Translations under genes and position numbers: made by a program
Notes under the pieces: model-generated
What the model was told of the DNA's origin: nothing
The model's input: only the letters and a program-made list of their open reading frames with translations
Databases searched by the model: none
Source of the DNA: Chrysemys picta bellii
Taxonomy: Eukaryota
Reading direction: 5' to 3'
Assembly (NCBI RefSeq): GCF_011386835.1
Contig: NC_088807.1
Location: forward strand, 23,498,001-23,562,000
DNA length: 64,000 nucleotides
In this document: positions 56,379-62,138 of the stretch, one piece after another
Position numbering within the stretch: the stretch's first letter is position 1
How the letters are laid out: each line of letters starts with the position of its first letter

Positions 56379-56708
56379 AGGCTGTGGATGCGGGATGCCC
56401 CACAGGACCCCGCCGACCCCGGCGAACGCCCCCTGGCTTGGGACCTGCAGCTGCCGTCCATCACCCTGCAGGACTGGAGCCTCCGGATGCTGTCCGGAGA
56501 GGGGCGAAGCAGGAAGTCCCGCCTCTGGAGCGGGCCAAGCCAGGAAGTCCCGCCTGCGGAGCTGGCCCCGGGCTGGGGCGGGAAGAGGAGCATCGTGGTG
56601 GCGGACGACGCGGCTTTCCGGGAGCGGAGCAAGATGCTGACGGCCATGGAGCGCCAGAAATGGCTCAACTCCTACATGCAGAAACTGCTGGTGGTGAACC
56701 CCGACTGA
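56101..56708 (+). CDS. PTH2: parathyroid hormone 2 (TIP39) precursor, about 146 aa
   Basis: KR then the 39-mer SIVVADDAAFRERSKMLTAMERQKWLNSYMQKLLVVNPD (56589-56705); coding exons 56101-56212 and 56381-56708; the ATG is one base out of frame with the signal peptide VTFLLGCCLLLCSG; AATAAA at 56760-56765. Confidence 0.92.
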
Positions 56709-57190: not shown

Positions 57191-59257
57191 GGACTGTCAC
57201 GGAGTTTGGGGGTGTCAGGGCCCTAGGCTGGTTGCGGGGGCGTTCCTAGCAGCAGTTTCCACGGAGCCCAAGGTGGGGGTCAGAGCTTTGAGGGGTGTGC
57301 TGGAAATGGGGGGATGGACTTGGGGGGCGGGGAACCCATGGGGCTCTTCCCCTCCCCCAGGTCTCTGTGCACCCCCAGACCTCCCTGCTCCTGCCATTGG
57401 GCTCCCCCCTGCCCTGGGGCTCCCTCCCACCTGCTACCTGCTCCCCATCTCCATGGGCTCCCTGCCCATCCTCCCCCCATCCTGAGGGTCCCCCTACCCC
57501 CATCTGTACCCTTCTCCCCATGGGCTGGGGTCTTTGGGGGGCTTACCCCCATTCCCTCCTTCCCAGATGGTGCGTGGAAGTGCCGGGAGCCCCCTTGCTG
57601 TGACCCCCAAGACCCCCAGTCTCTCACCCCTGCCAGGCCGGGGGTCTCCCGATTCTGCCCCATGGGGGGGCTCTCACCCCAGCCCTGGCGGTGCCCCTTA
57701 CTCCCGCCCTGCAGCCCCCTGCTACCCCAGCCCTTGGGCCTCCCCCCAGCCCTGTTGGTGTCCTGGTGATAAAGTGGGAATTTCCCACAATAGTCTGTGC
57801 GTGCCTCAGTTTCCCCACGAGCTGTGTGGTTAGCTAGCGGAGGGGGAGAAGGTGGTTCCCCCTTTGCAGTGACCCAGAGCCCCAGGTATGACTGAGCCTG
57901 GCAACCTGAGCCCAGCCCGGCCCGCTGGCACCCAGCAGCTAACGCCCGTGGGCGCCCCCTGGGCAGGGAGCCGGCCGGGTGCGACCAGCTGCAGGACAAA
58001 GTGTTGGGAGGAGCCGGGGGGGGTTGCTCCATGTGGGGCAGCTGGGGGCACCGGGCACTAAGGGGTCGGGGGGGGGGCCTCTGGGCTCAGGCCCGACCGA
58101 GCCGGCCTTGGCTGTAATTTCTGTTCTCGGCGCTAACCCAGGACTCTCCGCTCTGCGCCCAGACCCACAACTACCCCCTGCGCTCCCCCCCCCGGCTGAG
58201 TCACTCTCCAGCCCGGAGCTGGGGGGCCTGGCTCCCTCTGGGGGGGTCCGTCTAGCCCCAGGGCCCAGCCTGGGGCACTTGCTGCAGGGGGCTCTGGACT
58301 GACCCGGGGGGGGGGTTCCCAGGGGGCGGGAAGCCGAGGGCTCACCCCAGTGAGAGCGACCCCGAGGAGGCTGCCGACCCACAGATTCCTGCTGTATCAC
58401 TCCTAAGCTTCTTGCAGGGGCGGGGGAGAGAACCCAGGAGTCCTAGTTCCCAGCCCCCCTGCTCTAACCACTATATCCCACTCCCCTCCCAGAGCTGGGG
58501 GAGAACCCAGGAGTCTTGGCTCCCAGCCCCCCGCCCCACCCCAAGCACCACACAGGTATATCGAGCAGTGAAATATATTTATTGGCTGGTTGCTTAGGGC
58601 GACCTCGCCCCCCTGAGGTGGGGGGCTGAGTCTGGGGAGGGTCTGTTCCCCCAGGATCCCCGCAGGACTCGTGGGTCCCCGGCCCCATCTGTGCCCTCCG
58701 TCGCGGGCCGCCGGCGGTCCCAGCCGCCGTGCTCAGGGAGCGTCGGGTTGACATCCAGCTCCGGGATGCGTCGCGGGGAGGCGCTGGCTGCAGCTGTGTC
58801 AAGTGCCCTGTACTGCAGAGGGGGAGTCTCCCGGGAGTCCACAGCCCCGTCACTGTCCCCCATGCCGCATGATGACTAGGGCGTTCTGGGGGGCCATGGG
58901 AGGGGAAACTGAGGCAATGAGTGACGGAGAAGGGACGTACCCCCAAAGACACATGCGGAAGCAGTCGCAGAGCCGGGGAGAGAACCCAGGAGTCCAGACC
59001 CCCGCTCTAACCACTAACCGCACTCCCCTGCCAGAATCACACTAGGGCAGGAAGTGGAATGGGGTACCCGGGGGCGACTCCCCCTTGCTTGGCCAGGGGG
59101 CATCACACTAGGGGGCTGGCAGCGGCAGAACAGGACAGGGGGCAGGTCTGCGTGGAAGGCCACGAGATGGGGGGGTGTCCGAGGTGGGGGGGCAGATGGG
59201 GGAGGGCTGAGCATGTCCACACCAGGGCAGGGGGCACTGCTCTGGGGTGTGCGCCTG

Positions 59258-61506
59258 TCACCGTGAGGGGGGGCTCCTGGCATAGGCAGATTGGCGGGGA
59301 CCGGGGGCTAGGGCTGCCCAGCGGCATTGGGGAGGGCAGACGATCCAGGGCCCCAGCTCTGAAGGAGGGAAGGAGACAGAGACCCCTTGGTTAGCTCCAT
59401 GGGCAAGCCCCCGCCCCCCAGGGCCAGTGTGAGAACCCAGGAGTCCTGGCTCCCAGCCCCCCCCTCCCCCCGCTCTAACCACCAGACCCCACTCCCCTCC
59501 CAGAGCCAGGGAGAGAACCCAGGAGTCCTGGTTCCCAGCGCCCCCTGCTCTAACCACCAAACCCCACTCCCCTCCCAGAGCCAGGGAGAGAACCCAGGAG
59601 TCCTGGCTCCCAGCCCCCCCCACTTTTACTCACTACCCCCCTCACCCCGCCAGGGTCTGGCCCTGGCACTCACCTGGAAGACACAGGGAGGAGAGGAAAT
59701 CCAGCAAGGTCTGGAGGCCGCGCTCGGCCGGGGGGCGCAGGGGGCACCTGGAGGAGAGAGGGGCGGGTGAGTGGGGTGCAGAGAGGGGCGCTGAAGGGGG
59801 CAGGGGGCGCCTGGAGGAGAGAGGGGCGGGTGAGTGGGAGCAGAGAGGGGCGCTGAAGGGGGCAGGGGGGCGCCTGGAGGAGAGAGGGGCGGGTGAGTGG
59901 GGTGCAGAGAGGGGCGCTGAAGGGGGCAGGGGGGCACCTGGAGGAGAGAGGGGCGGGTGAGTGGGGTGCAGAGAGGGCCCTGAAGGGGGCAGGGGGGCGC
60001 CTGGAGGAGAGAGGGGCGGGTGAGTGGGGTGCAGAGGGGCGCTGAAGGGGCAGGGGGGCACCTGGAGGAGAGAGGCGCGGGTGAGTGGGGTGCAGAGAGG
60101 GGCGCTGAAGGGGGCAGGGGGGCACCTGGAGGAGAGAGGCGCGGGTGAGTGGGGAGCAGAGAGGGGCGCTGAAGGGGGCAGGGGGGCACCTGGAGGAGAG
60201 AGGCGCGGGTGAGTGGGGTGCAGAGAGGGGCCCTGAAGGGGGCAGGGGGGCGTGGCCAGGGACTCACCATCGAACCTCCACCTCCAGCTGCACCGGCTCC
60301 TCCGCAGCCTCCCGCTTCCCGGCTAAGGCCCCCTTATCCATCAGCGGGCGGTGGGCGTCTGCGAGAGAGAGGGTGAGGGGGCCTGTGGGCCCGGACGCCT
60401 GGGTTCTATCCGGCTCTGGAGGGGAGTGGGTCTAGTGGTTAGAGCAGGGTGGGCTGGGAACCAGGACGCCTGGGTTCTATCCCGGCTCTGGGAAGGGGGT
60501 GGGGTCTAGTGGTTAGAGCAGGGGAGGCTGGGAACCAGGACTCCTGGGTTCTCTCCCAGGGAGGGTGGGAAGGTGGCATGGTGCGGGGCGGGAGGGGAAG
60601 CCAGGATGCCTGGGTTCTCTCCTGGGGGGGGCAGGACGCCTGGGTTCTCTCCCGGGGAGGGGAGGGGGAGCCAGGATGCCTGGGTTCTCTCCCGGGGCGG
60701 GGGGGAGGGGGAGCCAGGACGCCTGGGTTCTCTCCCCGGGCGAGGGGGAAGGGGGAGCCAAGGACGCCTGGGTTCTCTCCGGGGCGGGGGGGGAGGGGGA
60801 GCCAGGACGCCTGGGTTCTCTCCCGGGGCGGGGGGGAGGGGGAGCCAGGACGCCTGGGTTCTCTCCCGGGGCGGGGGGGGAGGGGGAGCCAGGACGCCTG
60901 GGTTCTCTCCCGGGGAGGGGAGGGGGAGCCAGGACGCCTGGGTTCTCTCCTGGGGGGGGCAGGACGCCTGGGTTCTCTCCCGGGGAGGGGAGGGGGAGCC
61001 AGGACACCTGGGTTCTCTCCTGGGGGGGGCAGGACGCCTGGGTTCTCTCCCGGGGAGGGGAAGGGGAGCCAGGACGCCTGGGTTCTCTCCCGGGGGGGGG
61101 GGGCGCAGCGTGTGGGGGGGGTACTCCACGAGGGCCCAGCAAGTAGCCTGCACTGTTCAGGGTCCAGCCACGTTTGTCTTTGAGCTGCAGAAAAAATCCC
61201 CATTAATCGAGTAGCTCTACCCCCCCCCCCAATCTGAGCTCCCCCCACCCGCGACTGGGATAGCCCAGGACCCCAGCAGAGGCCTGGTGGGGATCGTACC
61301 ATTCAGGGGGCTCCGGGGGTCCAGGCTTCTGCCACCTCAGTGGCGATAGGTGGGGATGGAGGAGACAGGCCCAGGAGGGGGCACTGGGGAGGGGCTGGCA
61401 GGAGGGGGGGTCTGGGGGGCCTCTCACCATCAGAGGGATCCCGGTGCACTTCGCCCAGCAGCCCCCACAGGGCCAGAGAGATGCAGAGCACAGCAGGGGT
61501 CCCCAT
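59258..61506 (-). CDS. galanin-family prepropeptide (second galanin-type gene, probably GALP orthologue)
   Basis: Exons 61506-61428 (signal peptide), 61184-61130 (LKDKR GWTLNSAGYLLGP), 60358-60268 (HAHRPLMDKGALA GKR), 59747-59674 (QTLLDFLSSLCLP), 59358 onward (GALDRLP after a 1-bp shift); one extra base in the first coding exon and one missing in the last; C-terminal end uncertain. Confidence 0.85.
59745..60250 (-). repeat. tandem array of a 3' splice site (61-64 bp, 8 copies)
   Basis: Each unit on the minus strand has CTCAC, a pyrimidine tract and CTCCAG|G(T/C)GCCCC; AG positions 60191, 60127, 60063, 60002, 59939, 59875, 59812, 59749. Confidence 0.88.
60390..61095 (+). repeat. tandemly amplified MIR-like tRNA-head repeat
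   Basis: GGTCTAGTGGTTAGAGC (A-box-like) and CCTGGGTTCTATCCC (B-box-like); the B-box half is repeated about 14 times; related units occur at more than 25 loci in the window. Confidence 0.7.
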
Positions 61507-62138
61507 CTGTGAAAGAGAGAGAGAACCCAGGAGTCCTGGCTCCCAGCCCCCCCCCCTCCATTCTATCCACTAGACCCCCCCTCCCCTCCCAGAGCTGGGG
61601 AGAGAACCCAGGAGTCCTGGCTCCCAGCCCCCCCGCCCCCGCATTCTATCCACTAGACCCCACTGCTCTCCCAGAGCTGGGATAGAACCCAGGCGTCCGG
61701 GCTCCCTCTATCTCTGCCCCCCCAAACTCGCTGTTCATCACACACACACTTGGCTTTACCCTCAGCCCACTGCACCATAGGATATTTCTGTCCTCCCCCC
61801 AGCAAAAAAACCCTCCCATCCCACTGACCCAGCCCTGCCCCCACAGCTCTGCCAATGCCCCTCAAACCCGACTAGCAGCCCCCTGCTAGCCCAGCCCTGG
61901 GCTACCCCCCAGCCCCGCTGGTGCCCCTCACTCCCAACCCGCAGCTCCCTGCTAACCCAGTTCCACCGGTGCCCCTCACTCCCGACCCGCAGCCCCTGCT
62001 AGCCCAGCCCTGCCGGTGCCCCTCACTCCCGACCCGCAGCCCCTGCCAGCCCAGCCCTGGGCTCCCCCCAGCCCTGCCGGTGCCCCTCAGTCCTGACCTG
62101 TGGCAGGGCCCGACTCTGGGGGGCTGGGGGAATCTCAC

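Follow-up and report, generated by a model that had tools for sequence, protein, structure and literature searches.

A second galanin gene of the painted turtle: a corrected precursor model and a map of its locus

A 64,000-nt stretch of painted turtle DNA (Chrysemys picta bellii, contig NC_088807.1; hereafter the window) contains a galanin-family gene at about 58975-61506, whose product reads KDKR-GWTLNSAGYLLGPHAHRPLMDKGALA-GKR and then continues into a GMAP-like tail (all coordinates given for this gene refer to the minus strand of the window). The gene is very probably orthologous to the vertebrate-wide GAL2, a second galanin gene that goes by 'galanin peptides-like' in RefSeq and by gal.2 in Xenopus, and it is transcribed and spliced, with one non-coding and five coding exons. 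The gene itself is already known: it is annotated as 'galanin peptides-like' across vertebrates and on CM062334.1 of the painted-turtle genome, to which the window is 100% identical over 14.7 kb, and the family, though little studied, is in the literature as 'GALP' or 'GAL2', which removes the novelty implied by the original prediction made on this DNA and limits the importance of the find. That prediction, taken as a whole, is partly supported; what is new is that the gene model of Chrysemys picta bellii is corrected and the locus mapped more clearly.

Exon structure, transcripts and reading frame

The galanin core follows immediately on a dibasic cleavage site (KDKR-GWTLNSAGYLLGP at 61181-61131) within a 55-nt exon, 61130-61184, which encodes LKDKR, galanin(1-13) GWTLNSAGYLLGP and the first base of His14, and which is flanked by a canonical cag acceptor and a canonical gtggag donor. 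The Pfam Galanin family (PF01296) matches this exon piece with E=8.3e-8 and 32.5 bits, against a curated cut-off of 20.5. The next exon, 60268-60358, completes His14 and reads AHRPLMDKGALA-GKR, with GKR at 60320-60312, and then EAAEEPVQLEVEFDG. Upstream, the first coding exon (61428-61506, placed from the sequence and the X17 RNA contig described below) extends from the signal peptide MGTPAVLCISLALWGLLGE... to ...PLM; its ATG at 61506 abuts an AG acceptor (cacag/ATG), its donor is atg/gtgaga, and the hydrophobic N-terminus of the precursor is MGTPAVLCISLALWGLLG. Downstream, the first GMAP-like exon, 59674-59747, encodes APLRPPAERGLQTLLDFLSSLCLP, with TLLDFLSSL at 59710-59684, and the last exon, 58975-59358, reads ELGALDRLPLPNAAGQP, with GALDRL at 59354-59337, a TAG stop at 59310-59308 in the RNA-consistent frame and a 3' untranslated region (UTR) reaching at least to 58975. 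The ..LLDFLS.L.L.ELGALD.L block aligns with the GMAP of GAL.

Four public runs (X15, X16, X17 and X27; three studies, two organism labels) were aligned to 58900-61700, and each gave one low-depth contig joined across introns. The X17 contig consists of pieces 61428-61508, 60276-60358, 59674-59744 and 59158-59354, while in the last exon the contigs cover 59098-59354 (X15), 58975-59354 (X16), 59158-59354 (X17) and 59270-59354 (X27). The piece ends at 61428, 60358 and 59674 fall at canonical gt/ag sites, and both the 55-nt exon and the first GMAP-like exon have RNA-contig depth in all four runs. Furthermore, the X17 contig carries 94 extra 5' letters that are absent from the adjacent DNA, which shows that, as in GAL, a non-coding exon further upstream is joined to the ATG exon. 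Together, the Pfam match, the spliced contigs of four runs and the conservation of the peptide in other turtles confirm that the gene encodes a galanin-family precursor. A GAL-like structure, which had been proposed from the core exon and the acceptor abutting the ATG, is likewise found (a non-coding first exon, an ATG abutting its acceptor, a 55-nt core exon splitting the codon after Gly-Pro), as are the KR and GKR sites expected to frame an amidated peptide of 26 residues, three fewer than in galanin, and the downstream GMAP-like blocks TLLDFLSSL and GALDRL.

Two of the introns are repetitive. The one at 59748-60267 holds about eight copies of a 64-nt tandem repeat (Tandem Repeats Finder (TRF), 59733-60251, period 64, 8.2 copies), every copy of which repeats the pyrimidine tract, the acceptor and the opening bases of the TLLDFLSSL exon (ctctcctccag/gtgcccc); the RNA contigs use the acceptor of the last copy only, and RNA depth is zero over 59746-60215. 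The intron at 60359-61129 contains short interspersed nuclear element (SINE) fragments and a 40-70-nt tandem array (TRF rows spanning 60393-61100), and over this intron the RNA runs reach a very high, multi-copy depth.

The reading frame of the painted-turtle assembly is broken by five coding one-base differences from other turtles. An extra G is present at 61449 in the ATG exon, where X17 omits the base and all other turtles read GECAGIPLM, and another at 60275, where the pieces 60276-60358 of all four runs end exactly at the extra base and orthologues read EVEFDG. Three G or C stretches lack a base in the assembly: 59741-59744 in the TLLDFLSSL exon is short of a C and, in the last exon, 59351-59354 is short of a G and 59334-59336 of a C, the contigs of all four runs having an extra base after 59333. 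The alignment of every contig stops exactly at 60276 and 59354, with 87 nt, not 84, in between, which corresponds to the 29 codons FDGAPLRPPAERGLQTLLDFLSSLCLPEL. Two more one-base differences lie in the UTR, with an extra base after 59302 in all four contigs and after 59168 in X15, X16 and X17 (the X27 contig stops short of this position). Assembly and RNA thus differ by seven single bases in 2.4 kb, about half of them in G/C runs of three or more. Once the five coding adjustments indicated by RNA contigs and orthologues are made, the gene yields a 116-aa open reading frame that is identical to its Mauremys counterpart at 112 of 116 residues and ends ...GALDRLPLPNAAGQP, the RNA-consistent C-terminal reading being ...EVEFDGAPLRPPAERGLQTLLDFLSSLCLPELGALDRLPLPNAAGQP-stop; other turtles have a conserved 116-aa protein of the form MGTPAVLCISLALWGLLGECAGIPLM-LKDKR-peptide-GKR-...EVEFDGAPLRPPAERGLQTLLDFLSSLCLPELGALDRLPLPDAAGQP.

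The five coding indels are most likely assembly errors. A different explanation is that in the painted turtle the gene was inactivated recently and is now a pseudogene, in which case the indels would be real and the transcripts non-coding. Indeed, canonical splicing of the DNA as assembled breaks the frame in the first coding exon and runs into a stop after about 52 codons, and RefSeq managed just a truncated model, XP_065427183.1 ('galanin peptides-like'; CM062334.1, GCA_011386835.2), of 107 aa with an aberrant C-terminus. However, at four of the five coding indels the RNA contigs carrying the label of the window species depart from the assembly and restore the conserved frame; three of the five fall within stretches of three or four G or C and another (60275) within a GG pair, the kind of place where long-read errors typically arise; and, the indels aside, the 112/116 identity to Mauremys comes with no stop or missense decay. 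Inactivation appears very unlikely on this evidence, and assembly error is the reading we follow. The RefSeq model, which begins at an internal Met just upstream of LKDKR and carries the EVEVRWCPLR reading, is distorted by the one-base indels, which break the frame, and the RNA contigs supply the proper 116-aa precursor in its place. The downstream frame EVEVRW-CPLR... of the original prediction and any read-through of the ATG exon are artefacts of the same indels.

Some points weigh against reading the locus as an intact gene for a released 26-residue peptide. In addition to the early stop of the assembled frame, the error at 61449 rests on RNA with the other organism label (X17) and on orthologues, the contigs labelled with the window species lacking the ATG exon, and the RNA nature of the runs was only guessed, although their spliced structure shows RNA. 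The Pfam GMAP family (PF06540) had no match on the separate exon pieces of the window; it is present in the orthologues of Emydura and many others, with a weak match in the alligator orthologue. Finally, the searched literature held no peptide, receptor or tissue data for the 26-mer, the peptide string occurring in no paper.

Several other routes around the broken frame were considered and become unnecessary once the indels supported by RNA and orthologues are applied: an alternative acceptor at 61177 (PSD-DKR-GW) as a frame rescue, a weak donor after Gly-Glu, and another AG, at 59357, that would give access to GALDRL. In the assembly reading, the C-terminal tail is long and Pro-rich because a C is missing, and this tail is an artefact. 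Similar frame-breaking errors may be present in other GC-rich genes of the painted-turtle assembly.

Family membership and distribution

With the Pangshura orthologue as query, a family search returned 547 relatives, and among those listed two types part cleanly by peptide. In canonical GAL, GWTLNSAGYLLGP is followed by HA(V/I)D(N/S)HRS(F/L)..KHG.. and then GKR, giving 29 residues, whereas in the second type (GAL2) it is followed by HAHR(T/P)L.DKG..A and then GKR, giving 26. The GAL2 type occurs in turtles (>15 species), crocodilians and squamates, in frogs (including the cloned Xenopus laevis 'galanin prepropeptide, gene 2'), salamanders and caecilians, and in lungfish, Polypterus, sturgeon, gar and bowfin; the shark version has 29 residues (HAANGHRSL...), and divergent forms are present in some teleosts (Salvelinus, Hypomesus, Prochilodus, Triplophysa). 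No bird or mammal GAL2-type sequence was among the 120 matches listed, an absence that was not searched further. An alignment of 29 sequences shows no variation in GKR, in the KR that precedes the peptide or in its first 13 residues (R-GWTLNSAGYLLGPH and G-K-R), and a three-residue gap relative to GAL is common to all bony-vertebrate GAL2 sequences. In a maximum-likelihood (ML) tree of 45 sequences, canonical GAL forms a clade of its own (100/99) apart from GAL2, and the nearest row to the painted-turtle gene is Mauremys GAL2.

The gene might instead be the turtle's canonical GAL, merely divergent, since its N-terminal 13 residues are identical to those of galanin and its GKR site, GMAP-like tail and exon plan are as in GAL. 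This is contradicted by the 100/99 clade, which excludes the gene, by the three-residue gap, and by neighbours of the 19q13.33 type instead of the 11q13 type, human 11q13 being the canonical GAL paralogon. Neither a 29-30-residue peptide with HA(V/I)DNHRSF nor a place in the GAL clade is seen for the gene. Importantly, the tortoise Gopherus agassizii carries both an HAVDNHRSF-type canonical GAL (P0154) and a GAL2 (P0127). We regard the canonical reading as having almost no chance of being right; it is refuted for turtles as a group, the canonical gene having been seen in Gopherus and not looked for in Chrysemys picta. The predicted distinction from canonical GAL is therefore upheld, and the contrary case, that no other galanin gene exists, fails for turtles on the Gopherus pair.

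Within the family, variation is seen at the exon junction between Gly-Pro and His. Long isoforms of squamate GAL2 (P0077, P0075, P0074, P0116, P0068, P0054) carry 12 extra residues there, PLLPF.SP.PKA, and some geckos read GPPDAH. Mammalian GALP leaves its likeness to galanin at the same Gly-Pro point (GP-VLHLPQ...). The squamate long isoforms resemble GALP after Gly-Pro in 'LP.KAD', a short stretch from which we draw no claim. A 96-aa 'galanin peptides-like' protein of the stingray Hypanus sabinus (P0201) begins NWTLNSVGYLLGAQAML..., a sequence that seems to stand midway from galanin (GWTLNSAGYLLGP) to spexin (NWTPQAMLYLKGAQ).

Gene neighbourhood and the relation to mammalian GALP

The original prediction assigned the gene to the GALP lineage. 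On this strict reading, which is also that of Kim et al. (2014), mammalian GALP would be the relocated, remodelled orthologue of GAL2; according to the summaries in PMC9174643 and PMC4131245, Kim et al. give the name GALP to the corresponding gene of Xenopus and coelacanth. PMC4992253, on the other hand, calls the Xenopus/coelacanth gene a duplicated GAL (GAL2), since GMAP is kept and synteny with human GALP is lacking. Our data bear on both positions. The distributions are complementary, with no mammal among the listed GAL2-type matches and with matches to mouse GALP that are all therian except for two further database entries (GALP-type proteins were found in eutherians, in one marsupial, Dromiciops, and in these two entries). 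In the ML tree GALP is one clade (100/100) and falls within amniote GAL2, the split of GALP plus sauropsid GAL2 from the rest having 99/95 support. Both genes belong to the human 19q paralogon, and reviews cite galp as linked to kiss3 in Xenopus and coelacanth, in line with the KISS3-type gene beside GAL2 in gar (below).

However, the approximately unbiased (AU) test leaves unrejected both a GALP placed outside GAL2 (p=0.135) and a GALP placed with mammalian GAL (p=0.081), and the very long GALP branch joins fast-evolving, GC-rich turtle sequences, which suggests long-branch or compositional attraction. Microsynteny also differs, being 19q13.33 (KASH5-PTH2-GFY) for the turtle gene and 19q13.43 for GALP on the human map, and when the turtle and alligator loci were compared by tblastx with the GALP locus of Dromiciops (10-kb flanks), they had nothing in common with it. 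Orthology of GAL2 and GALP is thus plausible, disputed in print and unproven, and we see the matter as evenly balanced. The assignment to the GALP lineage is not established: the tree nests GALP in amniote GAL2, but the AU test leaves the alternative standing (p=0.135) and the neighbours are of the 19q13.33 type.

The order KASH5 - RAS-like - GAL2 - PTH2 - GFY is common to painted turtle and Alligator sinensis, KASH5 being identified by EF-hand_9/KASH_CCD and the RAS-like gene having 186 aa. PTH2 (the TIP39 precursor; Pfam TIP39 E=4.8e-27) lies at 56388-56708 on the plus strand of the window, tail-to-tail with GAL2, in the same arrangement as in Alligator sinensis. We take KASH5-PTH2-GFY to correspond to human 19q13.33, and GALP to lie at 19q13.43, about 6-7 Mb away. 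The RAS-like gene between KASH5 and GAL2 (L003:5910-8121 in alligator; L001:3321-5825 in painted turtle, just past the high end of the window) is a classical RAS with a polybasic tail ending CVIL, like KRAS4B, and may be a fourth RAS paralogue that the matching human interval lacks. In Xenopus, the 10 kb on either side of the gene showed no neighbours.

In spotted gar, GAL2 is followed by a small tail-to-tail KISS3-type gene and then by a gene matching the sauropsid GFY-like gene. The gene beside GAL2 (L004:17994-18179, minus strand, 2.5 kb from the GAL2 end) has a 107-aa product with no Pfam match; its last exon encodes ...EPYNVNSFGLRF-GKKR (...YNVNSFGLRF-GKKR), a Kiss3/Kiss1b-type kisspeptin-10 core, so that in gar a KISS gene directly adjoins GAL2, tail to tail. 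This adjacency fits the proposal of Kim et al. (2014), as it is relayed in PMC4131245 and PMC9174643, that the ancestral GAL and KISS genes stood side by side in tandem until the genome was twice duplicated. A motif search between GAL2 and PTH2 in the painted-turtle window found no kisspeptin-like motif. Together, the sauropsid order and the gar pair of GAL2 and a KISS3-type gene provide a concrete frame for the question of whether GALP arose from GAL2.

Predicted processing and comparison with known galanin-family genes

By analogy with established prohormone processing and galanin pharmacology, signal peptidase would remove about 20 residues of the 116-aa prepropeptide, and prohormone convertases would cut after KDKR and after GKR. 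Trimming by carboxypeptidase E, followed by PAM turning the Gly into an amide, would then yield GWTLNSAGYLLGPHAHRPLMDKGALA-NH2, a 26-residue peptide with an Ala-amide end, and the GMAP-like C-terminal peptide would be co-released. The N-terminal 13 residues of galanin carry galanin-receptor binding, and, since these are identical here, the 26-mer is expected to be a galanin-receptor agonist, acting through the N-terminal pharmacophore, with residues 14-26 presumably tuning subtype preference. A broader proposal, to which we give slightly less than an even chance, is that the 26-mer amide is a distinct endogenous galanin-receptor ligand across bony vertebrates (29 residues in sharks), with GALP as its relocated, remodelled orthologue; if true, the biology of GALP would have an ancient parallel outside the mammals, one processed in the galanin style. 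The predicted amide appears uncharacterised in the searched literature, and its receptor pharmacology would be new work.

The closest known systems are the GAL2 genes of other vertebrates, such as NP_001137371.1 of Xenopus laevis and XP_039366126.1 of Mauremys reevesii, with which the painted-turtle gene shares a precursor of 116-120 aa, KDKR before the peptide, a 26-residue peptide of the form GWTLNSAGYLLGPHAHR.L.DKG..A followed by GKR, and a GMAP-like ...LLDFLSxLxLxELGALDxL tail, while the neighbours KASH5, PTH2 and GFY are found in alligator as well. It differs from them at peptide positions 18-20, which read Pro-Leu-Met in turtles and Thr-Leu-Thr in most species, in the Pro/Ala-rich, weakly conserved turtle spacer, and in the five one-base indels of the painted-turtle assembly.

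Canonical GAL (PF01296 plus PF06540), whose human gene plan is described in PMC12749109, resembles the gene in residues 1-13, the dibasic site before the peptide, the GKR after it and a GMAP-like region. The six-exon plan is also alike, with a non-coding exon 1, an ATG opening exon 2, a codon split after Gly-Pro between exons 3 and 4, and the GMAP or GMAP-like part in exons 5-6. GAL differs in its peptide of 29-30 residues with HA(V/I)DNHRSF, in its separate clade and in having a different alternative insertion exon (GAL53). Mammalian GALP, for its part, shares GWTLNSAGYLLGP and the 19q paralogon, nests with amniote GAL2 in the tree and has an internal GKR/GRKR at a comparable distance past the motif. 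In contrast to the painted-turtle gene, in which none of these GALP hallmarks is found, GALP has an N-terminal extension before GWTLNS (APAHRGRG) with no dibasic cut directly before Gly-Trp, a 60-residue non-amidated peptide, no recognisable GMAP and other chromosomal neighbours.

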